Source: Setoptus koraiensis (lineage: Eukaryota; Animalia; Arthropoda). From it: a stretch of DNA of 64,000 nucleotides. A program made the translations under genes and the position numbers. This document shows, in pieces, positions 37,257 to 58,020 of the stretch. The first letter of the stretch is position 1. Each line of letters starts with the position of its first letter. The notes below the pieces were generated by a model. That model saw nothing but the letters and a program-made list of their open reading frames with translations, was not told where the DNA came from and did not search any database. The stretch is from contig CM106585.1 of assembly GCA_048013815.1 (NCBI GenBank), positions 16,368,001-16,432,000 of the forward strand. Direction: 5' to 3'.

Positions 37257-37356
37257 TATTCAATGGGAAGACAAAGAAGCAAAACAGGCATTCTTGTTTG
37301 GTCATATCAGTAGACTTAAAAGCATTCTGTGTAATTTAATATATACATAAATGAAA
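37257..37356 (+). repeat. Left copy of a 100-bp direct repeat bounding the duplicated block
   Basis: 97/100 identical to 48943-49042 (three G/A differences). Confidence 0.92.
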
Positions 37357-37410
37357 GAAAATGAAAATGAATTACATGTCATTTCAATCGTAGATACCCA
37401 AAGCAATTAT

Positions 37411-37806
37411 TTCATCGATTTTGCTACGTCTTATTGCTTGGTTGGCGTCATTTATATACTTGACCACCTCATTCTTTATAGGCACTTGAATTTGATGATT
37501 GTTTTCTTGCAATTGCTTGTGGAACTCTAATAAATATTCATAGCAGCTGTCAACATCCTCAGATGGACCCAAAATTGTAACTTCATTGCATTTCACCCCA
37601 GGTTCTGGAAACGTGATTGTGATTTGGTTAAATTTGTCTCTAATCTCCTTGATTTTTTCTCCTTTTCTGCCAATTATGAGGCCATGCAATTGTTGATCGA
37701 TAACTAACTTTTTGCTCGACTCAAACTTCTTAGCTATAATATTTATCTTTTCCTCAGCAATCGCTACAGCTTCCGCTGTATCTTCTATTGTAATAAATTC
37801 ACTCGA
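37411..37806 (-). pseudogene. 396-bp internal copy of vigilin (one KH domain)
   Basis: Matches 18383-18778 with 3 substitutions, same orientation. No ATG. Confidence 0.95.
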
Positions 37807-37814
37807 CTCAAAAG

Positions 37815-37931
37815 GCCCATGTTGCGTCTCATCAACAGCAAGCGATTTTTGTATTTGAAATTCGAGATGGATAACGAGCAAGAATTGAAACGCCAAAGTC
37901 GGGCAATTATTCTGTCATCAACAAGAGTCTA
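37815..37931 (+). pseudogene. Fragment X0 of the UPF1-like pseudo-helicase gene, cut by the gap
   Basis: Matches 43726 onward, shares the ATGTTG allele with X2, and carries a 7-nt deletion (GGCCACC). Confidence 0.9.
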
Positions 37932-38031
37932 NNNNNNNNNNNNNNNNNNNNNNNNNNNNNNNNNNNNNNNNNNNNNNNNNNNNNNNNNNNNNNNNNNNNN
38001 NNNNNNNNNNNNNNNNNNNNNNNNNNNNNNN
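37932..38031. other. Assembly gap (100 N)
   Basis: Direct read. Confidence 1.
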
Positions 38032-38785
38032 TTATTACAGCCCACTTGGCGTTCAGGTTCAATATTCTATTGATAGTCTCGAGGACTTGTCGCAATTTAC
38101 GTCTTTGAGCATCTTCGTTCTGAGTCACTTCAACCACGTCTAATTTTGATCCGCTATTGGGAGAGATACAACGAAAATCCGTTATTCAAATGATAGAGAC
38201 ATTTCGATAATTTTTCGTCTGATAATTCAACCCACCGAAAGCGTCATGCACTTACCTCAGTTTTTCAACTAGTTTACCCAAAACTTGACCATCATAAAGA
38301 TCTTGCTCTAGATTTTTCACGATGATCCGCTGATCGTTTAATTCATCATTAATCCAATTGACCAATGTAGTGACCAAATGGTTAAATTGTGGCGAATCTC
38401 TTGACGACTGATCAATCACCGCCCTGCTCTCGTTCTCGCCAAGCCCGTAATCGCCGCCGGCATCTATTATTCTGGGAACGATATTTCCATCTATGGCCTC
38501 TTTTCCTTCTTGTTCGACTTGTTCCACTGTCAGCTCAGCAACTGTATTATCGTCATGTAGCATTCGAGCAGAAAATTTGCACGATATTGAATGACATCGT
38601 TAATCACGATACTTGTTTTATAGTTTTTTGAGCAACTAAATTATCAGCCTATCTAGCGAGGTTCTATGGGACACAAAAATAGAGAGATAACAGTTGGAGA
38701 TATGTTGCTTACCTTCGCGTTGCTTCTTCTTGCGACCAAGTGTGCCAATGTAATCCAAGAATCCTCCAGATTCTTGTTTGTTCAT
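38032..38785 (-). pseudogene. Parvin copy P1: exons 1-2 and start of exon 3; rest hidden by the gap, so it may be complete
   Basis: Near-identical to 47866-48619 (offset 9834) with a few substitutions. Confidence 0.8.
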
Positions 38786-38894
38786 ATCTAAGCGCGGGTG
38801 CGACAACGATACAGGCGGCCCATGATGAGGTAGATTCTGTTGTTGTTGCTGTCTTTGAAACTCTTTACCATTGTATTGATACTGGCTAAGGTTA

Positions 38895-40163
38895 TTGAAT
38901 TGTTGCGGGGATGAAGTTGGAGTGGATGGACAGTCTCGCCTTAACGTGGAGGACAGTGTGTCGTCACTATACAATGATCATTGGCTGCCCGAGTGTCAAC
39001 AACAAATATCCTCGGTACGCTGGAAACGAGAATCTTGCCAAGGAAAACATTTTCTCACAGCGAGACTGGATCGCCACACGCTAGACAGGACATTCGCAAG
39101 AAAAATCCATCACTCCAACAGGATGCAAATGATTGAATACGACAGCAGCGGTAAAAAGTTGTGGTCGGCCGAGGGAGTGCCCATCTTGCGTCTCATCAAC
39201 AGCAAGCGATTTTTGTATTTGAAATTCGAGATGGATAACGAGCAAGAATTGAAACGCGGCCACCCAAAGTCGGGCAATTATTCTGTCATCAACAAGAGTC
39301 TACAGCTATTCTATCAGCAGTCGATGGAGAGGCTGAAAGGAAACATCAGGCGCATCGCAGGCGATACACTATTGCGCGAAATTATCCAAACAAGTTGTGG
39401 AGAGGGAAAAAATGTGTGCCACTTGGATTTTAACACGCTGAGATCGGATGACACAGGTATATGGGTCATCGAGGAGGCCTTACAATCGGCAATATGTAAT
39501 AGAGTTACCATATTGGTGAGTGAGCCGGGCCAAGAGGCCATCGGCATACTTGACATCGTGTCATTGGCTCACTTGCACAAGACAATATCAGAAAGTGATC
39601 AGACACCTTCTACCGGTAATTCAAAAGTGTTGATATGTGCCGGCAGTGCTGGCTCGCTCGAGGCCATAGCAGAGAAACTCCATGAATTAGCTGATTTGAA
39701 GGTCAAGATCTTCAGCTCGGCTGACTGTCAGTCGCAGCAATCATCTTTTTCTTATTTTGACGATCTCAATGATGAAGATATTGTCGATGATGAAGATGAT
39801 GATTACTACGAGAACGTCAATGTCGACAATTCAAGAATTGATACCAGAGATCTAAAAGTGGAATCGGATTTGGGCATGCCTGCTGCACGAAGCATTTTCT
39901 TCGAAAACTCCATAGATGATGTTGATTGTAACGTTATTTTATGCACTTTTCACGATGCACTCAAACTGTCATCGTGGACCGAGTTTTTAGTTCATTCTTT
40001 GATACTGTACAGATGTAACGAGTTCAGTATGTCCGATGTGCATCTATTATTCCATTTTCTACCCAAACGTATCACAATTATGTCAGACGGTAGCGAGGTG
40101 GACGTTGTGTTCAATAGTTTCAAAAGTATGGGCTTCAAGCCGAAGAGAATAAATGATAAATAA
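38895..40163 (+). CDS. X1: stand-alone degenerate UPF1-like helicase module (stalk-1B-RecA1) with acidic insert; start uncertain (TTG 38895, first ATG 39123)
   Basis: Uninterrupted 422-codon frame, paralogous to the C-half of Y1/Y2. [33 protein letters not shown] and KRITIMSD align with UPF1 motifs Ia, Ib and III. Confidence 0.6.
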   Translation: [422 protein letters not shown]

Positions 40164-40626
40164 ATGATCGTACACCTAGCAACTGACCTGTTGACTGCTA
40201 GCGTTAGCGTTGCGGTTCGAAGTCCAACCTTGTCTCAATTCCAATCTATCTTGCCTTTCTTTTCTTTGCACGCTCACCTGCTCTAAGCACGGGTCACGTC
40301 GCATTAACGGAACTGTCAACTGGAGAAGTGCTGTAGCGAAAGTGTTGTGAGTTGGTCAGCATTGTCTGTTTGCACGGACGATGGCGCTTGTTTGTCCAGA
40401 ATACCCGCTCTCCGCTTGTCTGCATCACACTGTCCATCTCCTTTATGACCAGCTATGATAAAATCCTCGATTCACCGTCTCTATCATCATCAACATACAT
40501 CAAGTGAACATCAGCGATCTCGGCCAGATTTTTCTGCAACTTCGTGCAAATTCTTGTATCAATTTTATTTCCATACTAGCTATTTTACGGCAGTTCCAAC
40601 AGTGCCTTACTATATATTCACAAGCA

Positions 40627-42594
40627 ATGCCAATCAAGTCTTCGGTCGACCAGCACAATAATGAAGGATCTCTCTGGCGCCTGGATATGCTGCCCCCTGA
40701 GCTGTTGCTCATTATCATCGAAAATTTAAACGATTTACTCGATCGACATAATTTGGCCCAAGTGTCTACGAGATTCAGCAAGCTTATTGATAACGAAAAT
40801 CTAGAGGAGGGCACACTCAGTAGCGATATTTCGGATTCGCCAGATTGTCAAGTGTTGGAGCCAATTGTTCGCAAGCTGCCCAAGCTAAAACGACTCACCC
40901 TTCATTCAGGATGCTATGCGATCAGAAGATTCATGCCAGACTCATATTTCAGTTCGTCTGACAACTGCAGCCTACTAACAGCGCTCAATTTTCATGGAAT
41001 ATCCTTTGAACCCGATGAACTGACAATGATTGTGACTAATTGTCATCAATTGACGACGCTCAAACTGGATCATGTCATGCTTGGGGACGCTGGCGAACTG
41101 AGAAGATTGGTGGACCGGGTTAATGGAGGGTTGTTGCATCTCATCGTGATTTGGGTTATAACCTCTCACATTCGCAATCCTTGGGCTCGTAATCCCCCCA
41201 GGCCTGTGTTGCGTTCGATCGATATCAGAAGGAACCATTATTATGACGGGTACGAGGGCGAGATGAATGCCGTTCTCACCTCATTTCGTAATTTGGAGAG
41301 TCTATCGGTTACAATAAGAGCGTCGAGAGATTTAGACGAGTTGGTTAGAATCTTGAACCGTTTGAGAACGCCGTTGCGCACCCTCGTTCTCGATCAATAC
41401 TACGGCCCATTGCCAAATATTGACGTGCCAACAATTATCAGCGGCGAACAAGCTGAATTGCATTATAAAGAAAGCACTGCTCATTACATACCTGCAGGAA
41501 TTACCAGCCCAAAAGCGATACGTGATTTGGAGGGTCGTGTGTCGCAAATCTACACAGATTATTTCCTGCCAGAGTGTCAACAACAAATATCGACCGTTCG
41601 ATGGGGCCGAGAATCTTTGCAATGGAACGCCAGGAGACATTTTCTCCTGGCGTTCCCGTGTAGTGGGACACTGGACGAGTCATTCGTAAAAATGAATGGT
41701 CAGTCCAACTCATCCGTTTTGCGAATGACCGAATACGACTGCGTGAGTGGTGAAGAGTTGTGGTCAAACAGTGCATTTCTATGTCCAAGACTCATCAACG
41801 GCGAGGAAATTTTACATTTGTCCATCGAGATGAGTGAAGAAGAATGTAAACGCGACCGATCAGAATCAGGCAATTTCTGGTTGGTCAATGAAGATGACCT
41901 GTCCTATTACTATAACGTGGGTTGCGAGAATCTAAAACGAAAGATTAGACGAATTTCGGGCGATGAGCTGTTGCGTGAAATTATCGAGAAAAGTTGTGGA
42001 GACGTGCAACTCGTGGGTAACTTGGTTTCTAAAAACAAGCTGAAACAACGAGAGTACGCCAATATACACACAGAGAATGAGGCCATCAAATCGGCACTAT
42101 CCAATCGGGTCACTCTCATGGTGAGTGCGCCAGGACAAGAGGCGAACAGGATAAAATCTATTGTGTCATTGGCTATTCATTTGCACAACACAATATCATA
42201 TCGGAATTATCCGAAAATGATGATATGTGCTGGTAGTGATCGTTCACTTGAGGCAATCGCAGAGAAAATCCACCAGTTGAGCGAATTGAAGATATACAGG
42301 TACAAGTCTGCGTACATAGATTATAAGGATAGTAGCGTGATTTTATGCACTTTTCCAGATGCACTGAGATCATCATCATGGTTTGGGCTTTCAATTGATT
42401 CATTATTACTATACGAATGTAACGAGTTCAGCATGTCTGATGTTCATCTGCTGTTCCATTTATTGCCCAGACGAACAGTACTGGTGTCTGACACCAGTGA
42501 GGGAGGCACTGTATTCACCAATTTCAAGAAAATGGGCTTCGAGCCAATAATGATGAATGATAAATGTTATAGCAGCGAAGAAAATAAAGAATAA
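40627..42594 (+). CDS. Y1: F-box + LRR + degenerate UPF1-like helicase fusion, 655 aa
   Basis: F-box [16 protein letters not shown]...[8 protein letters not shown]; LRR segments [27 protein letters not shown]; C-half aligns with UPF1 stalk/1B/RecA1. First ATG 40627. Confidence 0.85.
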   Translation: [655 protein letters not shown]

Positions 42595-42830
42595 TAAAAA
42601 ACCATCTAGTTGGAAAGCTGTTCGTGCGAATTAGGTAACACCCAACGACTAATCGACCGAAAATGTGGTTAAAGTTTTGATTTTATCAGAATTGATGAAG
42701 ATTTTTACATTATTGTGACAGACAGAGATGGCAGTTAATGTAAATTGTTGATCACATGCACATTCTCAAAATTACCATTAGAAATATACTGATTAGTGGA
42801 GTAAATTTTGTTGATGCTTCTCATGTCGTT

Positions 42831-43469
42831 CTAGACGTGTTTGTACTTGCTAAATATCATGTATAATACTCGTAAAGTTGACTTGAGATCGGCGTTTACA
42901 ATATCCTCAGCGCGTACTTTTTGTTTTAGGTCTACGTCCGCATCTTCCATTAGCTTGAAGGCCACATTAACATTATGTAGTTTGTGTATTGGTGACGTAT
43001 TGACATAATTTTCATGTTGAAGAGCTGTTTGGACGCCGTTGGGTGCCATATCAGCGATGGGGTCCGTAGGTTGTGTAAAAATATTGCCCAGTGGTACAAA
43101 ATAGTTCTCTAAACTTGCCATAAGAAATATCAATAGAAGGCCATGGCTAAATTGTTGGGGATCCAAATCGCCTCCGGTGTGAACAGAAAAGCATTCAATA
43201 TTGATCTTGTTAAGATGTCTGTTAACGAAATTGCATAGTGACCTTTTAACTGCGGCCAATTTATCTGGCGCATGATCGAATAGGGTGTCAAATGCGTCAC
43301 GTGGCTCAGTTTTTAAACCCAATTCATTGTAAGTTTCTGTCAGTTTTTCCTCTATGCTTCTTGTTATGATTTTGCCCCCTTGTTTTGACACGAAATTAAC
43401 TCTCGCCGAAACATCCGAGGGCAAACGAATTGGTGCTCTAAAATGTCGTATCATAGTGACTAATAACAT
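42831..43469 (-). pseudogene. Parvin copy P2: 5'-deleted, C-terminal (CH2) 212 aa with a junction-created ATG
   Basis: Near-identical to 47180-47815. The 941 bp equivalent to 47816-48756 is replaced by the 3 nt CAT. Confidence 0.85.
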
Positions 43470-44503
43470 TGGATGGACAGTCTCGCCTTAACGTGGAGGA
43501 CAGTGTGTCGTCACTATACAATGATCATTGGCTGCCCGAGTGTCAACAACAAATATCCTCGGTACGCTGGAAACGAGAATCTTGCCAAGGAAAACATTTT
43601 CTCACAGCGAGACTGGATCGACACACGCTAGACAGGACATTCACAAGAAAAATCCATCACTCCAACAGGATGCAAATGATTGAATACGACAGCAGCGGTA
43701 AAAATACGTGGTCGGCCGAGGGAGTGCCCATGTTGCGTCTCATCAACAGCAAGCGATTTTTGTATTTGAAATTCGAGATGGATAACGAGCAAGAATTGAA
43801 ACGCGGCCACCCAAAGTCGGGCAATTATTCTGTCATCAACAAGAGTCTACAGCTATTCTATCAGCAGTCGATGGAGAGGATGAAAGGAAACATCAGGCGC
43901 ATCGCAGGCGATACACTATTGCGCGAAATTATCCAAACAAGTTGTGGAGAGGGAAAAAATGTGTGCCACTTGGATTTTAACACGCTGAGATCGGACGACA
44001 CAGGCATATGGGTCATAGAGGAGGCCTTGAAATCGGCAATATGTAATAGAGTCACCATGTTGGTGAGTGAGCCGGGCCAAGAGGCCATCGGCATACTTGA
44101 CATCGTGTCATTGGCTCACTTGCACAAGACAATATCAGAAAGTGATCGGACACCTTCTACCGGTAATTCAAGTGTTGATATGTGCCGGCAGTGCGGATTC
44201 GCTCGAGGCCATAGCAGAGAAACTCCATGAATTAGCTGATTTGAAGGTCAAGATCTTCAGCTCGGCTGACTGTCAGTCGCAGCATCTTTTTCTTATTTTG
44301 ACGATCTCAATGATGAAGATGATGATTACTACGAGAACGTCAATGTCGACAATTCAAGAATTGATACCAGAGATCCAAAAGTGGAATCGGATTTGGTACT
44401 ACCCAAACGTATCACAATTATGTCAGACGGTAGCGAGGTGGACGTTGTGTTCAATAGTTTCAAAAATATGGGCTTCAAGCCGAAGAGAATAAATGATAAA
44501 TAA
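43470..44503 (+). pseudogene. X2: frameshifted and deleted copy of X1
   Basis: 2-nt deletion near 44170, 4-nt deletion near 44283, 18-nt deletion and ~185-nt deletion relative to X1. Confidence 0.9.
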
Positions 44504-44972
44504 ATGATCGTACACCCAGCAACTGACCTGTTGAGTGCTAGCGTTAGCGTTGCGGTTCGTAGTCGAACCTTGTCTCAATTTCCACCGATCTTACCTTTCT
44601 TTTCTTTGCACGCTCACCTGCTCTAAGCACGGGTCACGCCGCATTAACGGGACTGTCAACTGGAGAAGTGCTGTAGCGAAAGTGTTGTGAGTTGGTCAGC
44701 ATTGTCTGTTTGCACGGACAATGGCGCTTGTTTGTCCAGAATACCCGCTCTCCGCTTGTCTGCATCACACTGTCCATCTCCTTTATGACCAGCTATGATA
44801 AAATCCCTCGATTCACCGTCTCTATCATCATCAACATACATCAAGTGAACATCAGCGATCTCGGCCAGATTTTTCTGCAACTTCGTGCAAACTCTTGTAT
44901 CAATTTTATCATTTCCATACTAGCTATTTTACGGCAGTTCCAATAGTGCCTATTACTATATATTCGCAAGCA

Positions 44973-46943
44973 ATGTCAACCAACACTTCGGTCGACCAGC
45001 ACAATAATGAAGGATCTCTCCGGCGCCTGGAAATGCTGCCGACAGAGCTGTTGCTCATTATCATCGATAATTTGGACGATTTACTCGATCGAACTCGCCT
45101 GGCCAAAGTGTCGGCGAGATTCAACGAGCTCATAAACCATGCCAACAGATTTTTAGGCAAAGGGGGCGTATTCAGTAGCGATATTTCGGACTCGCCATAT
45201 TGTCAAGTGTTGGAGCCATTTCTTCGCAAGCTGCCCAAGCTAAAACGACTCACCCTTCATTCAGGATGCTATGCGATCAGAAGATTCATGCCAGGCTCAT
45301 ATTTCAGTTTGTCTGACAACTGCAGCCTACTAACAGCGCTCAATTTTCATGGAATATCCTTTGCACCCTATGAACTGACCATGATTGTGACCAATTGTCA
45401 TCAATTGACGACGCTCAAGCTGGATCATGTCATGCTTGAGGACCCTGACGAACTGAGTAGATCGGTGCGCCTGGTTCATGTAAGGTTATTGCATCTCAGC
45501 GTGATTGGGGTGATAACCACTCACATTCGCAATCCTTGGGCTCGTAATCCCCCTGTGTTGCGTTCGCTCGATATCAGAAGGATACATTATTATAGCGAGG
45601 AAGAGTACGAGGAAGAGATGAATGCCGTTCTCACCTCATTTCGTAATTTGGAGAGTCTATCGGTTACAATAAGAGCGTCGAGAGATTTAGACGAGCTGGT
45701 TAGACTCTTAAACCTTTTGAGAACGCCGTTGCGCACCCTCGTTCTCGATCAATACTACGGCCCATTGCCAAATATTGACGTGCCAACAATTATCAGCGGC
45801 GAACAAGCTGAATTGCATTATAAAGAAAGCACTGCTCATTACATACCTGCAGGAATTACCAGCCCAAAAGCGATACGTGATTTGGAGGATCGTGTGTCGC
45901 AAATTTACACAGATTATCTGCTGCCAGAGTGTCAACAACAAATATTGACCGTACGATGGGGCCGAGAATCTTGGTATTCCAGACATTTTCTCCTGGCGTT
46001 CCCGTGTAGTGGGACACTGGACAAGTCATTCATAAGGATGAATGGTCATTCCGACTCATCCGAATTGCGAATGACCGAATACGACTGCGTGAGTGGTGAA
46101 GAGTTGTGGTCAAACAGTGCATATCTCGATTCACGCCTCATCAACAGCGAGGAAATTTTACATGTGACCATCCATGAGATGAGTGAAGAAGAATGTAAAC
46201 GCGACCGATCAGAATCAGGCAATTTCTGGTTGGTCAATGAAGATGACCTGTACCATCACCATAACGTGGGTTGCGAGAATCTAAAACGAAAGATTAGACG
46301 AATTTCAGGCGATGGGTTGTTGCGTGAAATTATCGAAAAAAGTTGTAGAGACGTACAAGTCGTGAGTAACTTGGCATCTAAAAACACGCTGATGCAACGT
46401 GAGTACGCCAATGTACACACAGTGAATGAGGCCATCAAATCAGCACTATCCAATCGGGTCACTCTCATGGTGAGTGCGCCAGGACAAGAAGCGAACAGGA
46501 TAAAATATATTGTGTCATTGGCTATTCATTTGCACAACACAATATCATATCGGGATTATTCGAAAATGATGATATGTGCTAGTAGTGATCGTTCGCTTGA
46601 GGCAATCGAAGAGAAATTCGACCTGCTGAGCGAATTGAAGATATTCAGGTACGATTCTGGGTACGGTGATATTGGAGGTTGTAACGTGATTTTATGCACT
46701 TTTCCAGATGCACTGAGATTATCATCATGGTTTAGGCCTTCAATTGATTCATTATTACTATACGAATGTAACGAGTTCAGCATGTCTGATGTTCATCTGC
46801 TGTTCCATTTATTGCCCAGACGAACAGTACTGGTGTCTGACACCAGTGAGGGAGGCACTGTATTCACCAATTTCAAGAAAATGGGCTTCGAGCCACTAAT
46901 GATGAATGATAAATGTTATAGCAGCGAAGAAAATAAAGAATAA
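44973..46943 (+). CDS. Y2: F-box + LRR + degenerate UPF1-like helicase fusion, 656 aa
   Basis: Intact paralog of Y1 (about 83% aa identity by hand count); all indels are in frame. Confidence 0.85.
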   Translation: [656 protein letters not shown]

Positions 46944-47179
46944 TAAAAAACCATCTAGTTGGAAAGCTGTTCGTGCGAATTAGGTAACACCCAACGACTA
47001 ATTGACCGAAAATGTGGTTAAAGTTTTGATTTTATCAGAATTGATGAAGATTTTTACATTATTGTGACAGACAGAGATGGCAGTTAATGTAAATTGTTGA
47101 TCACATGCACATTCTCAAAATTACCATTAGAAATATACTGATTAGTGGAGTAAATTTTGTTGATGCTTCTCATGTCGTT

Positions 47180-48619
47180 CTAGACGTGTTTGTACTTGCT
47201 AAATATCATGTATAATACTCGTAAAGTTGACTTGAGATCGGCGTTTACAATATCCTCAGCGCGTACTTTTTGTTTTAGGTCTACGTCCGCATCTTCCATT
47301 AGCTTGAAGGCCACATTAACATTATGTAGTTTGTGTATTGGTGACGTATTGACATAATTTTCATGTTGAAGAGCTGTTTGGACGCCGTTGGGTGCCATAT
47401 CAGCGATGGGGTCCGTAGGTTGTGTAAAAATATTGCCCAGTGGTACAAAATAGTTCTCTAAACTTGCCATAAGAAATATCAATAGAAGGCCATGGCTAAA
47501 TTGTTGGGGATCCAAATCGCCTCCGGTGTGAACAGAAAAGCATTCAATATTGATCTTGTTAAGATGTCTGTTAACGAAATTGCATAGTGACCTTTTAACT
47601 GCGGCCAATTTATCTGGCGCATGATCGAATAGGGTGTCAAATGCGTCACGTGGCTCAGTTTTTAAACCCAATTCATTGTAAGTTTCTGTCAGTTTTTCCT
47701 CTATGCTTCTTGTTATGATTTTGCCCCCTTGTTTTGACACGAAATTAACTCTCGCCGAAACATCCGAGGGCAAACGAATTGGTGCTCTAAAATGTCGTAT
47801 CATCGTGACTAATAAGTGAATGATCTGAACTGAGTTTCTACTGTGAATACCCTCTACTGTCCATTTTATTACAGCCCACTTGGCGTTCAGGTTCAATATT
47901 CTATTGATAGTCTCGAGGACTTGTCGCAATTTACGTCTTTGAGCATCTTCGTTCTGAGTCACTTCAACCACGTCTAATTTTGATCCGCTATTGGGAGAGA
48001 TACAACGAAAATCCGTTATTCAAATGATAGAGACATTTCGATAATTTTTCGTCTGATAATTCAACCCACCGAAAGCGTCATGCACTTACCTCAGTTTTTC
48101 AACTAGTTTACCCAAAACTTGACCATCATAAAGATCTTGCTCTAGATTTTTCACGATGATCCGCTGATCGTTTAATTCATCATTAATCCAATTGACCAAT
48201 GTAGTGACCAAATGGTTAAATTGTGGCGAATCTCTTGACGACTGATCAATCACCGCCCTGCTCTCGTTCTCGCCAAGCCCGTAATCGCCGCCGGCATCTA
48301 TTATTCTGGGAACGATATTTCCATCTATGGCCTCTTTTCCTTCTTGTTCGACTTGTTCCACTGTCAGCTCAGCAACTGTATTATCGTCATGTAGCATTCG
48401 AGCAGAAAATTTGCACGATATTGAATGACATCGTTAATCACGATACTTGTTTTATAGTTTTTTGAGCAACTAAATTATCAGCCTATCTAGCGAGGTTCTA
48501 TGGGACACAAAAATAGAGAGATAACAGTTGGAGATATGTTGCTTACCTTCGCGTTGCTTCTTCTTGCGACCCAATGTGCCAATGTAATCCAAGAATCCCC
48601 CAGATTCTTGTTTGTTCAT
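47180..48619 (-). CDS. parvin: Parvin (two CH domains), complete copy P3: complement(join(47180..47987,48090..48360,48547..48619)), 383 aa
   Basis: TLGRKKK, LVNWINDEL..RIIVKNLEQDLYDGQVL, RDAFDTLFDHAPDKL and EDIVNADLKSTLRVLY. GTAAG..AG introns are in phase; an alternative acceptor at 48376 is possible. Confidence 0.93.
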
Positions 48620-48756
48620 ATCTAAGCGCGGGTGCGACAACGATACAGGCGGCCCATGATGAGGTAGATTCTGTTGTTGTTGCTGTCTTTGAAACTCTTT
48701 ACTATTGTATTGATACTGGCTAAGGTTATTGAATTGTTGCGGGGATGAACTTGGAG

Positions 48757-48907
48757 TGGATGGACAGTCTCGCCTTAACGTGGAGGACAGTGTGTCGTCA
48801 CTATACAATGATCATTGGCTGCCCGAGTGTCAACAACAAATATCCTCGGTACGCTGGAAACGAGAATCTTGCCAAGGAAAACATTTTGTCACAGCGAGAC
48901 TGGATCG
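48757..48907 (+). pseudogene. X3: 5' fragment of X
   Basis: Matches X1/X2 starts, then breaks off at ACTGGATCG. Confidence 0.9.
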
Positions 48908-48942
48908 GCCTATTCACATTATTGTGACAGATAGAGATGGGA

Positions 48943-49042
48943 TATTCAATGAGAAGACAAAGAAGCGAAACAGGCATTCTTGTTTGGTCATATCAGTAGA
49001 CTTAAAAACATTCTGTGTAATTTAATATATACATAAATGAAA
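48943..49042 (+). repeat. Right copy of the 100-bp direct repeat
   Basis: 97/100 identical to 37257-37356. Confidence 0.92.
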
Positions 49043-49079
49043 AAAATAATATCTCTTACTACTCGATTTATTAGAACTG

Positions 49080-54637: not shown

Positions 54638-56719
54638 ATGGAAATAAGGCCATCATATATCGAACATCGAGAAGGACTGTGGTCAAAGCATGAGGAGGAA
54701 AGACTGGTTTCATTAGAGAGCGCTGAGAAGAAGCCAATCACTATCAAGGCTCTGAATAAGAACGGCGAGAAAGTCTCCAAGGAAGGACTAAGTTGGTCAA
54801 CAAGTCCGTGGCAAATCGCCCAACAAATCCTTCCGAAAGCATTTTGTGATGAGATTATTGTGGCGAAGGTGAACGGGATTCTTTGGGATCTAGAACGCGT
54901 TCTTGAAGAGGATTGTGAAGTCGAATTTCTTAGGTTTGATAATGAGGAAGCTCAAGCTGTCTTTTGGCACTCAACGGCTCACGTACTGGGCGAGGCGATC
55001 GAAAGATTTTATGGTGGCCATCTTTGCTACGGACCACCTATTAGTGAAGGATTCTATTATGACGTGTTCATGACCAATGAATCTGGTGATGAATCTCGAA
55101 ATGTTGTCTTGCCTCAACACTATGCAGAGTTGGAAAAAATCATGAAAACAATCTGCTCCGAGAAGCAACCTTTTCGACGCCTGGAACTTACAAAAAAACA
55201 ACTCAAAGAAATGTTTTTTTACAATCAATTCAAGCTGAGAATACTGGACAACAAAGTAACTGAACCTAGCACAACGGCCTATAAATGTGGTACATTGATA
55301 GATTTGTGTCGTGGTCCTCATGTTCGCCACACCGGACTTTTGAAGGCTTTCAAAGTAGCTAAGCATTCCTGCTCATATTGGGAGGGCAAAAATGATGCTG
55401 AAAGCTTACAACGTATTTACGGTATATCCTTTCCCAACAACAAACAGTTACAGGAGTATATCAAGATACAAGAAGAGGCTGCGAAGTACGATCACAGGCG
55501 CATCGGTGTGGAACAGAATCTATTCTTTTTTGATGAACTTAGCCCCGGTTCTTGTTTTTTCACTGGAAAAGGAACTCATATATACAATACTTTGGTGAAG
55601 TTTCTAAAGGAACAATATCGGGAGCGAGGCATTGAAGAAGTGAAGACGCCAAATATATTCAAGTCTAACTTGTATAAAATCTCTGGACATTTGGACCATT
55701 ATGCGGACAACATGTACTCCATAGATATAGAAAAAGAAAAGTTTTGCTTGAAACCAATGAACTGTCCAGCCCATTGTCTGATATACAAGAGCGAAGTTAG
55801 ATCGTGGAGAGACCTACCCATTAGATGGGCAGACTTTGGTGCTTTACACAGGAATGAAGCTTCGGGAGCTCTATCTGGTTTGACCCGGGTGAGAAGATTT
55901 CAACAGGATGATGCACATATCTTTTGTACTAAAGACCAAATCGAGTCAGAAGTAGCACAAACTATCGAATTCATTGAACATGTCTACAAGCAATTCGGGT
56001 TCACATGCGAGTACTGTCTATCAACAAGACCAGAATCGTACCTGGGAGAACTCGCAATATGGGATCAAGCGGAAGATGCACTGCGTCATGCCCTGGGTGG
56101 TACAGGCCAAAGATACAAAATCAAGGATGGTGATGGAGCCTTTTATGGGCCCAAGATAGATATCACCTTGAGGGATGCATTACGTCGGCCACATCAATGT
56201 GCCACAATACAATTAGACTTTCAACTACCCGTTCGATTTGAACTGTCTTATGTGAGCCAAGATGGCTCTCATCAAAGACCGGTCATGGTTCATCGTGCAA
56301 TCCTTGGCTCTGTTGAACGGTTTATGGCGATCGTCATAGAAAATTTTAAAGGCAACTTACCTTTTTGGCTATCTCCAAGGCAAGCACAGATTGTTTCAGT
56401 GGCAACAGCATTTGATGATTATGCTAGGACAGTGAAGGATGAATTACATCGGGCTGGATTTGAGGTTGCTCTAGAGTTGGATCCAGGCAAGACGTTGGAC
56501 AAGAAGGTTAAGATGGCGTGGGAACATCATTTCAAATTTTTGTTGTTTGTCGGTGAGAAAGAGAGTAAAACTAATAGTGTCTCTGTGAGGACTGTTGTCG
56601 CCAACAAGCGCTTCACCGAAGTCCCAATCGATAAACTCATTGCGACCTTTTCCAAATTCACCAAAGGTCGCATGTCTGACCAAGATATGGTGGAGTTGCT
56701 GGACGAACTGAACGAATGA
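54638..56719 (+). CDS. TARS1: Threonine--tRNA ligase (cytoplasmic type), intronless
   Basis: TGS domain, HSTAH, DLCRGPHV, KPMNCP, RVRRFQQDDAHIFC, GAFYGPKIDI, CATIQLDFQLP and HRAILGSVERF. Confidence 0.97.
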   Translation: MEIRPSYIEHREGLWSKHEEERLVSLESAEKKPITIKALNKNGEKVSKEGLSWSTSPWQIAQQILPKAFCDEIIVAKVNGILWDLERVLEEDCEVEFLRFDNEEAQAVFWHSTAHVLGEAIERFYGGHLCYGPPISEGFYYDVFMTNESGDESRNVVLPQHYAELEKIMKTICSEKQPFRRLELTKKQLKEMFFYNQFKLRILDNKVTEPSTTAYKCGTLIDLCRGPHVRHTGLLKAFKVAKHSCSYWEGKNDAESLQRIYGISFPNNKQLQEYIKIQEEAAKYDHRRIGVEQNLFFFDELSPGSCFFTGKGTHIYNTLVKFLKEQYRERGIEEVKTPNIFKSNLYKISGHLDHYADNMYSIDIEKEKFCLKPMNCPAHCLIYKSEVRSWRDLPIRWADFGALHRNEASGALSGLTRVRRFQQDDAHIFCTKDQIESEVAQTIEFIEHVYKQFGFTCEYCLSTRPESYLGELAIWDQAEDALRHALGGTGQRYKIKDGDGAFYGPKIDITLRDALRRPHQCATIQLDFQLPVRFELSYVSQDGSHQRPVMVHRAILGSVERFMAIVIENFKGNLPFWLSPRQAQIVSVATAFDDYARTVKDELHRAGFEVALELDPGKTLDKKVKMAWEHHFKFLLFVGEKESKTNSVSVRTVVANKRFTEVPIDKLIATFSKFTKGRMSDQDMVELLDELNE

Positions 56720-56799: not shown

Positions 56800-57663
56800 T
56801 TAATACAAGAATTCATTTTCGATTCCGTCGTCATACTCGCCCATGCCGTCATACTCGTCAGAAAATCCGTCTTCATCATACGGGTCGTAATCGAACCCTT
56901 CGCCATAGAATTCCTCATCGGAGTCTAGACGATCTGCTACATAAATTCTCGGCTTCTCAAGCTCCGGAATGTCACCGTGGTAGTTCTCCAAAGTGAGATT
57001 GTTGAGGTTGGAGCAGCTTGAAATTATCTTGTCGAGAGATTCCCTGTCATTCCTGTCTAAATCAACAAATAACAGTTCGAGTTTTGGGCAGGAACATATT
57101 AGATTCAGAGCATCTTGGCGAGAAGATGTGTATCTAATATCTAGCGATTGCAGGATGAACTCTTCATTGGCTACAGCGATACGTTGTCCCTCAATATATG
57201 GCATGTCAAGGTGGAGGAGTCTTGATTTGACCTCAGGCAACAGCCTACTTAACTCATCCTCGCCTTCCAATTGAACATGGTCAATCCTGAGCGTAGTTAC
57301 CTGGCGACACTTGGTCACAAGGTTAAATAATTCTGAGGGAGCGAATTTTATATATTGTAATTCCAAGGTGGTCAACATCGGACAATTATCACTCAAGTAA
57401 CGGTGCGAATCAGTGGGAAATCTTGAGACCATTCTGCTGAGGTTGACTTCTATTAAATTTGAAAGCTTCATGAAAAGTGGCTCTAAGGTCGTCATGTCCC
57501 TGTATGACCAGAGATCGTCTTCGCCGAATTTCTTTAGTCTGTTGAGATGATCGGTAACCAGCAATTTCGTTTTCCTGGAAACCATCGAAAGACGGCCAAA
57601 GTCGTTGAAATCGTCCAGACAGCTTATGATCCTTAGCCAGAGTTCGTTGGGTAATTTATCCAT
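56800..57663 (-). CDS. F-box + LRR protein with acidic Tyr-rich tail; paralog of the Y1/Y2 N-half
   Basis: F-box MDKLPNELWLRIISCL. LSDNCPMLTTLEL..IKFAPSEL..VTKCRQVTTLRIDHVQL..DELSR aligns with Y2 LSDNCSLLTALNF..ISFAPYEL..VTNCHQLTTLKLDHVML..DELSR. Confidence 0.85.
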   Translation of the reverse strand: MDKLPNELWLRIISCLDDFNDFGRLSMVSRKTKLLVTDHLNRLKKFGEDDLWSYRDMTTLEPLFMKLSNLIEVNLSRMVSRFPTDSHRYLSDNCPMLTTLELQYIKFAPSELFNLVTKCRQVTTLRIDHVQLEGEDELSRLLPEVKSRLLHLDMPYIEGQRIAVANEEFILQSLDIRYTSSRQDALNLICSCPKLELLFVDLDRNDRESLDKIISSCSNLNNLTLENYHGDIPELEKPRIYVADRLDSDEEFYGEGFDYDPYDEDGFSDEYDGMGEYDDGIENEFLY

Positions 57664-58020
57664 TTTTTCTAGCAAGTAATATCGTAATACAAAGTCAATT
57701 TAGAAAAGTAGCATGTGAGTAAAGGTATCATTACATTTATTGCATAATTGGCTGTTACAAATTGTTGGTCAACACGTGGTGGCGTCGTGAGCGCTACCTT
57801 GCGCGTAAAAAGAGAACTACCACTCCGCATCGTCATCATATGTTTTTATTTATGCATTTGGTGCACTTACAAAAAAAGTACACTTCGTGCTTTTTCTCCT
57901 TATGTGTCTCACAATTGTCACTTAATCGCCTTATCACCTGATTACTGGCGACAGTTTCACACTTGCCTGTCCAATGCAAACAATACACGAGGTCCATGTA
58001 ACAACATTTCATTATTTATC

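Follow-up and report, generated by a model that had tools for sequence, protein, structure and literature searches.

Tandem F-box and leucine-rich repeat genes predicted to carry an ATPase-dead UPF1-like module in Setoptus koraiensis

The window analysed here is a stretch of 64,000 bases of the Setoptus koraiensis genome (assembly GCA_048013815.1, contig CM106585.1, positions 16,368,001 to 16,432,000 of the forward strand), and all positions given below are counted from its first base. Two long open reading frames (ORFs) lie on its plus strand (40504-42594 and 44895-46943 in the ORF list), and the genes that they contain, Y1 and Y2, encode FBXL-type proteins, with an F-box and leucine-rich repeats (LRRs), that carry a UPF1-like module, predicted to be ATPase-dead, without the second RecA domain (RecA2). 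Together with their relatives they form a small lineage-restricted family. The two proteins are 83% identical. An earlier reading of the same letters, called here the original prediction, had described them as F-box-LRR proteins fused to a catalytically dead UPF1 helicase; both ORFs are as it described, and every peptide string that it quoted is present.

Domain architecture of Y1 and Y2

An F-box was accepted where Pfam PF00646 or PF12937 matched at the gathering score or above. The N-half of Y1 taken alone matches F-box-like with 25.2 bits (cut-off 24.3) and F-box with 23.2 bits (cut-off 20.5), and F-box-like is matched by all seven of the family N-halves. In an alignment of these seven sequences, whose members are 24-34% identical to Y1 (the Y1/Y2 pair aside), L22, P23, I31, L43, V46 and L53 of the F-box are among the invariant columns, and no other part of the family's N-halves is as well conserved as the F-box positions. 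An LRR solenoid lies directly 3' of the F-box, which assigns the proteins to the FBXL subclass by both fold and profile. The N-half profile matches TIR1 (E 1.4e-6), an F-box protein (7.5e-5) and COI1 (4.8e-4), with weaker matches to MAX2 and FBXL3 (E about 0.02), and residues 57-276 of the AlphaFold2 model superpose on the LRR of COI1 (Z 16.2, root-mean-square deviation 3.7) and on Skp2 (Z 14.3) using VIA-align. The N-terminal F-box and LRR-like repeats of the original prediction are therefore borne out, and can be specified as TIR1/COI1/Skp2-type.

Regarding the C-half, direct sequence evidence is weak. The Pfam match to AAA_11 is sub-threshold (E 0.085); phmmer against the PDB returned UPF1 in five of six matches (E 0.37-0.52), aligned as originally proposed; and a three-sequence profile built from Y1, Y2 and the stand-alone half-helicase X1 beside them (the Y/X profile) found only UPF1/NAM7 in the PDB, with E values of 1-2. 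When this profile was compared with one of 15 canonical UPF1s by hhalign, the match reached E 1.6e-4 (probability 51%, 88 columns). Intermediates give a much clearer result. The Y/X profile matches two full-length helicases from another sample, P0001 (E 1.7e-24, profile positions 16-333) and P0006 (E 6e-10), and these in turn are much nearer UPF1 than any other solved helicase: against the PDB, P0006 matches UPF1 with 1e-68 and Sen1 with 7e-37, and P0001 with 3e-53 and 3e-29, respectively. A profile of all ten C-halves of the family matches UPF1 with 4e-35 and Sen1 with 2e-15. On these comparisons the homology of the C-half to UPF1-type helicases is firm through intermediates and weak directly.

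The predicted fold points in the same direction. The AlphaFold2 model of Y1, made from a 12-row family alignment, has a mean predicted local distance difference test (pLDDT) score of 67.8, with most of the C-half at 70-90; modelled alone, the C-half has a pLDDT of 70.3 and a predicted TM-score of 0.60. Foldseek against the PDB placed UPF1 at ranks 1-13 for the full model (best E 1.1e-11) and first for the C-half model (E 2.1e-13), followed by IGHMBP2, SETX/Sen1, DNA2, ZNFX1 and Aquarius; this was a check that the original prediction had itself proposed, and its outcome agrees with the proposal. The top AlphaFold DB clusters are likewise UPF1s. With VIA-align, model residues 291-647 superpose on residues 296-722 of human UPF1 (Z 17-18), and other Upf1-like helicases score about equally, so that Aquarius, ZNFX1, Sen1 and DNA2 are not separated from UPF1 by this method; the structural alignments from Foldseek give 14-16% identity to UPF1. 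Because helicase relatives were in the multiple sequence alignment, fold and sequence are not independent lines of evidence; what the fold adds is the assignment of the stalk and 1B domains. In the model a stalk helix (residues 295-311) leads into barrel strands (318-421), after which a pair of return helices (422-456) precedes a RecA1 of Rossmann type. The stalk/1B region, which includes the ISTVRW string of Y1 (41587-41604), has a pLDDT of 70-85 and also aligns to residues 176-350 of P0001; the assignment comes from the model, the sequence evidence alone being non-significant. The claim that the C-half follows UPF1 through stalk, 1B and RecA1 is thus sustained by the intermediates, the Foldseek ranking and the superposition.

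Within RecA1 the helicase motifs can be mapped in order, and the catalytic ones are degenerate. Walker A is GPPGTGKT in UPF1 and P0006, GPPGTGVT in P0001 and SAPGQEAN in Y1; motif Ia is CAPSN in UPF1 and P0006 and ICAGSD in Y1; motif II is IDESTQ in UPF1, IDECTQ in P0006 and LYECNE in Y1; and motif III is VGDHCQLG in UPF1, VGDDKQLG in P0006 and VSDTSEG in Y1. Neither the Walker A pattern GxxxxGK(T/S) nor the Walker B residues DE are present in Y1 or Y2, which have SAPGQEAN and YE in their place. Where UPF1, P0001 and P0003-6 carry domain 1C, both proteins have a gap of ~60 columns. Every half-helicase of the family stops at a ...G(F/I/L)xP element that corresponds to LGIRPIRLQVQYRM of UPF1, directly before motif IV, and Y1 ends about 30 residues past motif III, ahead of the QYRMHP motif IV; because the half-helicases end at this point, RecA2 is wholly absent. 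Consistent with this, Pfam gave no match to AAA_12 (RecA2, motifs IV-VI) in Y1 or Y2. The N-terminal CH zinc-knuckle (PF09416), by which UPF1 proper binds UPF2 and which is present in canonical UPF1s, had no Pfam match in Y1, Y2, P0001 or P0006. Catalytic motifs are degenerate in all of the half-helicases, and residues of the fold core are retained (NRVTL, HLxxT, SKILICA, DS, LPRR and GFxP). The C-halves of Y and X are acidic, with an isoelectric point (pI) of 5.2-5.8, versus the basic 9.2 of the full-length relative P0006.

In superfamily 1 (SF1) helicases RecA2 normally closes the ATP site from the opposite side. Since the Walker A lysine and the Walker B aspartate are gone and RecA2 is absent, the module of Y1 and Y2 is predicted to be incapable of ATP hydrolysis; with 1C and RecA2 it would also have lost half of the RNA channel. 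The motif mapping, the ~60-residue gap and the end before motif IV confirm the losses that the original prediction had listed.

Relatives and ancestry of the module

In order to identify relatives, an exhaustive hmmsearch with the Y/X profile was made over 1.84 billion representative proteins, and eight matches were obtained. Seven are relatives, and all seven come from one Logan assembly, SRR33593474; the eighth, P0007, was rejected as an unrelated lipocalin-repeat protein. P0001 (824 aa) and P0006 (710 aa) both have AAA_11 and AAA_12. P0003, P0004, P0005 and P0008 are intact ORFs of 670-723 aa with an F-box, an LRR part aligning to the N-half of Y1, and AAA_11, which is over the gathering score in P0003, P0004 and P0008 and below it in P0005. 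These four retain a 1C-like insert that Y1 and Y2 have deleted. The family proteins of the two organisms share the same architecture at only about 25-30% identity.

The full-length relatives, all three of which lack the CH domain of UPF1, can be placed in a series of decay. P0006 (L003:1124-3256) has intact motifs, P0009 has GPPGASKT, and P0001 (L002:892-3366) has NESNQ besides its GPPGTGVT; P0001 also has an N-terminal hydrophobic segment that is probably membrane-spanning. A further gene of the other sample (L007:3-1481) contains one in-frame stop and, at the 1C position, an acidic insert rich in Tyr and Asp; it runs off its contig before its N-terminus.

The ancestry of the module was examined with a maximum-likelihood tree (LG+C20, 34 rows, archaeal outgroup). 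Eleven family members form one clade with support of 100/100 and a long branch (1.21), outside all canonical UPF1s sampled. Within it the order is (P0006, P0009), then P0001, then two groups of half-helicases: [L007-X, (X1, (Y1, Y2))] and [P0008, (P0005, (P0003, P0004))]. The Y C-halves cluster with the stand-alone X type and not with P0003-8, X1 being the sister of the C-halves of Y1 and Y2. The half-helicase state predates the split of the two organisms, since L007, a gene of the other sample, branches with X1 and Y. P0009 aside, the nearest database relatives of P0006 are canonical UPF1s, at ~35% identity and with the CH domain present. The position of the clade may be distorted by long-branch effects. 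Taken together, the module is derived from UPF1 through a strongly diverged, lineage-specific clade of CH-less paralogues. The original prediction had called for a phylogeny with the host UPF1: its UPF1-type ancestry stands, but the module falls in a separate long-branch clade and is not a copy of the host's canonical UPF1.

Other searches returned no further member. A word-based homologue search with Y1 gave no match at E <= 0.001, a scan of JGI (Joint Genome Institute) metagenomes with the Y/X profile gave 600 pattern matches of which 0 were confirmed, and the ESM Atlas returned for Y1 only low-scoring (0.71) AAA_11 clusters and no close relative. The three-part architecture is in none of the 30 AlphaFold DB clusters listed, where one loose match, I3EIJ7, was left unchecked. 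I3EIJ7 is a 1229-aa 'Helicase ATP-binding domain-containing protein' that aligns loosely (TM 0.27) to query residues 25-642, possibly a further case of a repeat domain ahead of an SF1B helicase. A literature search found no description of a fusion between an F-box and a UPF1-like or AAA_11 domain, and no mention of SRR33593474. This agrees with the statement in the original prediction that no F-box-LRR-UPF1 fusion is known: the family is so far known from the genome of Y1 and Y2 and one other sample, and its architecture is apparently novel.

The tandem array and the divergence of its genes

The coordinates of the array and of the parts of Y1 are listed in table 1. Self-comparison of the window reveals a tandem segmental duplication, in which 40059-43466 matches 44399-47815 (93.9%), 38923-39873 matches 43470-44396 (95.5%) and 38032-39073 matches 47866-48907 (99.4%), and each repeat unit consists of X, then Y, then a duplicate of the final exon of a parvin-like gene. 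This exon copy shows 100% identity across 42735-43334, the 600 bases compared, and the copy of the 5' part is 99.4% identical. AATAAA motifs overlap the stop codon of Y1. A tblastn search against the window showed X1 to be 47% identical to the C-half of Y1, and found short X fragments at 37816-37893 and 48729-48974; X1 has a strongly acidic insert at the 1C position.

Table 1. Positions of the Y1 domains and motifs and of the genes and remnants of the array within the window
Feature	Position	Strand	Description
Y1 gene	40627-42594	+	single ORF, 655 codons plus stop; first in-frame ATG at 40627
Y1 F-box	40684-40803	+	residues 20-59; includes a ten-residue motif at 40690-40719; Pfam matches over cut-offs on the N-half
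Y1 LRR solenoid	40804-41472	+	residues 60-282; ~7-8 repeats; AlphaFold2 strand/helix periodicity, VIA-align, profile
Y1 stalk helix, 1B-like beta-barrel, return stalk helices	41509-42066	+	residues 295-480
Y1 RecA1-like domain	42067-42591	+	residues 481-655; ends before motif IV
Y1 dead Walker A	42124-42147	+	SAPGQEAN, residues 500-507; Lys to Ala
Y1 motif Ia	42217-42240	+	MMICAGSD; in RecA1
Y1 1C deletion	between about 42290 and 42330	+	alignment gap
Y1 dead motif II	42403-42426	+	includes LYECNE; Asp to Tyr
Y1 motif III remnant	42475-42492	+	TVLVSD; in RecA1
Y2 gene	44973-46943	+	656-codon paralogue of Y1 with the same motifs; first in-frame ATG at 44973
X1	38895-40163	+	half-helicase ORF alone, 422 codons; no F-box/LRR; no ATG at start
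X2	43469-44500	+	pseudogene copy of X1, frameshifted
Solo cassette remnant	48757-48943	+	X start (151 bp), GCCTATTC, 28 bp of Y 3' flank
Z	56800-57675	-	F-box-LRR paralogue alone, 291 aa; acidic tail
Parvin-like (CH-domain) gene	47180-48808	-	intact; flanks the array
Partial parvin-like copies	42831-43469 and 38032-38890	-	within the array

The solo remnant is a deletion derivative of the X-Y cassette and is located at the intact parvin-like gene's 5' end. Joints from 39073 to 42707 in public contigs were considered as a possible presence/absence polymorphism; this was rejected, the solo remnant accounting for them. An assembly gap of 100 N is present at 37932-38031, immediately preceded by part of an X copy (37815-37931) and by a stretch (37257-37360) that duplicates sequence from behind the array (48943-49046). 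The array at 37257-38031 may be longer than assembled, or misassembled. The F-box-LRR paralogue Z is 33-37% identical to the Y N-half and has a Tyr/Asp/Glu-rich tail in place of the helicase module; it adjoins a threonyl-tRNA synthetase gene (54638-56719), and in the ESM Atlas it falls among generic F-box clusters. Rfam and tRNA scans of the 64-kb window gave no match.

The alignment of Y1 with Y2 contains 159 substitutions over 1953 bases and, in addition, five indels (9, 6, 6, 9 and 3 bases), all in frame, with 0 stops; indels in their upstream flank are of 1, 3 and 2 bases. The ratio of nonsynonymous to synonymous divergence (dN/dS) between Y1 and Y2 is lower in the F-box (0.54) and the stalk/1B region (0.63) than in the LRR (0.97) and RecA1 (1.07), and it is 0.38 between X1 and the C-half of Y1. 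Divergence of the coding sequences (CDS) is 8.1% (dS 0.10), versus 2.8% in the upstream and 0.23% in the downstream flank, and the CDS are mosaics of 99% identical blocks and 80-88% identical blocks. Because synonymous sites have also diverged, patchy gene conversion or homogenisation of the flanks would explain the contrast between CDS and flanks better than positive selection alone. Positive selection as the sole cause is ruled out on the same ground.

Contigs from public runs cover Y1 with few mismatches, and one of them (record 23, 41373-41597, 1 mismatch) spans the junction between the LRR and the C-half. The fusion is not an assembly chimera, since an independent-run contig crosses the junction and four independently assembled proteins elsewhere share the architecture.

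Candidate functions and significance

F-box proteins recruit substrates through their C-terminal domains. The most likely reading, which we hold at about even odds, is that Y1 and Y2 are substrate receptors of Skp1-Cul1-F-box (SCF) ligases that use the ATPase-dead pseudo-helicase as a binding platform. The F-box would dock them on Skp1-Cul1, and the pseudo-helicase, alone or with the short LRR, would provide the substrate-recognition surface. A protein or ribonucleoprotein (RNP) would be a likelier partner than naked RNA, a preference that is weakly favoured because the module is acidic and has lost 1C and RecA2. A plausible partner would be a component that contacts the full-length helicases of the family (P0006 type), or those helicases themselves. 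The genes would evolve through tandem duplication, patchy gene conversion and loss. In favour of this reading are signs of coding constraint, namely the in-frame indels, the dN/dS of 0.38 against X1 and the four intact ORFs of the second organism, together with the F-box, the FBXL-type LRR, the UPF1-type ancestry and truncation point, the retained residues of the fold core and the acidic C-half.

Several observations weigh against this receptor role. When the whole proteins are scored, F-box-like reaches 24.0 and 22.9 bits, slightly below the Pfam cut-off of 24.3, and the F-box is a low-confidence part of the AlphaFold model (pLDDT 34-54). The dN/dS of Y1 and Y2 is 0.76 overall and about 1 in the LRR and RecA1, values that are compatible with either diversification or a relaxation of constraint. 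The locus, a hot-spot of rearrangement, includes the pseudogene copy X2. The five runs with the sequence, whose kinds are unspecified, appear genomic, as coverage continues through intergenic DNA; no RNA-Seq run is among the runs listed, and these runs give no evidence of transcription. Finally, net acidic charge is a weak argument against RNA binding.

Some of these observations also bear on another explanation, in which the array is unstable and Y1 and Y2, duplicated within it recently, are drifting neutrally or decaying to pseudogenes with no present function. The overall dN/dS, the pseudogene, the solo remnant, the assembly gap nearby and the absence of expression evidence from the public runs would all fit it. 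Against it, the 655- and 656-codon ORFs are both intact despite 8% divergence with five of five indels in frame, the architecture is kept across two organisms at the low identity given above, and F-box and fold-core residues are invariant; we consider it unlikely that the genes are simply decaying.

An adaptor guided by RNA is doubtful to a similar degree. Here the half-helicase would grip RNA via 1B and motifs Ia-Ic of RecA1 and bring the SCF ligase to particular RNPs. Its ancestor was an RNA helicase, and the 1B barrel and the motif Ia-like ICAGSD are kept; however, 1C and RecA2, which complete the RNA channel of UPF1, are gone, the C-half is acidic, and X1 and its relative in the other organism carry a strongly acidic insert at the 1C position. 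Also in its favour, an RNA-binding F-box protein, CFB2, is reported from trypanosomes. The literature search returned an abstract about VSG mRNA-binding proteins of trypanosomes in which the F-box is mentioned many times (PMC8051951).

The original prediction had proposed an integrated decoy: the dead UPF1-like surface would mimic the host UPF1, so that viral antagonists of nonsense-mediated decay (NMD), or other UPF1-binding proteins, are captured and ubiquitinated. A UPF1-derived fold is indeed joined to an F-box, and the family shows the tandem duplication and rapid divergence of many immune gene families. Most known partner surfaces of UPF1 are located in its CH domain, 1C, RecA2 and tails. 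The module lacks all four, and decoys normally remain close to the guarded protein; the module belongs to a long-branch, lineage-specific clade apart from canonical UPF1, with 14-16% identity to UPF1 and a direct profile-profile similarity of only E 1.6e-4; and it is also present without an F-box, in X1. The raised dS of Y1 and Y2 (0.10, versus flank divergence of 0.2-2.8%) points to gene conversion rather than to an arms race. The idea of a UPF1 decoy is weakened by these results, and we rate it as improbable. A related scheme, in which a fossilised UPF1-like bait would trap proteins of pathogens or selfish elements that attack UPF1-like helicases or the full-length helicases of the family, and deliver them to ubiquitination, seems to us comparably improbable; if true, such SCF surveillance would be the equivalent, in an animal and built on a cullin-RING ligase, of the integrated decoys found in plant nucleotide-binding leucine-rich repeat (NLR) receptors. 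Very unlikely is a role independent of the F-box, with the half-helicase as a stoichiometric, dominant-negative inhibitor or partner of the full-length helicases and the F-box vestigial: the stand-alone halves X1 and the L007 gene (whose contig ends before the N-terminus) and the co-occurrence of full-length helicases of the same clade in the other organism favour it, but the F-box positions are the best conserved of the N-half, which argues that the F-box is in use.

As putative SCF receptors with a pseudo-helicase platform, Y1 and Y2 can be compared with several known systems. They are like UPF1/NAM7/SMG-2 in the order stalk, 1B barrel and RecA1, with motifs I, Ia, II and III recognisable in register; UPF1 is also the best Foldseek match in the PDB and AlphaFold DB, and the full-length members of the family are closest to it by sequence. 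Unlike these helicases, Y1 and Y2 have no CH, 1C or RecA2, have dead Walker A and B motifs, and are fused to an F-box-LRR part, as pseudo-helicases. With the lineage-specific UPF1-like clade they share signatures such as LPRR ahead of motif III and a terminal GF(K/E)P, and with P0003, P0004, P0005 and P0008 the same three-part architecture and truncation point. In FBH1/FBXO18, too, a single polypeptide contains both an F-box and an SF1 helicase domain. FBH1 has no LRRs, and its helicase is an active DNA enzyme of the UvrD type (SF1A); in Y1 and Y2 the module behind the LRR is dead, half-length and of the SF1B (UPF1) type, and their best matches are SF1B. Like the FBXL receptors Skp2, FBXL3, TIR1 and COI1, they have an N-terminal F-box and then a curved LRR solenoid, but their LRR is short and is followed by a 360-residue pseudo-enzyme domain; no FBXL-type protein with a comparable pseudo-enzyme domain was found in the searches made. 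Plant NLR integrated decoys and the enlarged F-box families known from nematodes combine a recognition scaffold with a domain taken from another pathway. Y1 and Y2 resemble them as a scaffold with a borrowed domain, tandemly duplicated and rapidly changing, and differ from them in that their borrowed domain has diverged far from any target in the host and no evidence of immune function accompanies it.

If the genes are unexpressed, they would illustrate how domains are shuffled within an unstable gene array. The members of the family can be graded, from a near-intact helicase through a full-length protein with a dead P-loop and a half-helicase to the F-box fusion, a series in which a motor would have been turned into a binding domain. 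A helicase-derived pseudo-enzyme at the substrate-recruiting position would constitute a novel type of recognition module, and it would join a relic of RNA surveillance to ubiquitination. If its partners are RNA-decay factors or viral proteins, it would represent a lineage-specific regulatory or defence pathway.

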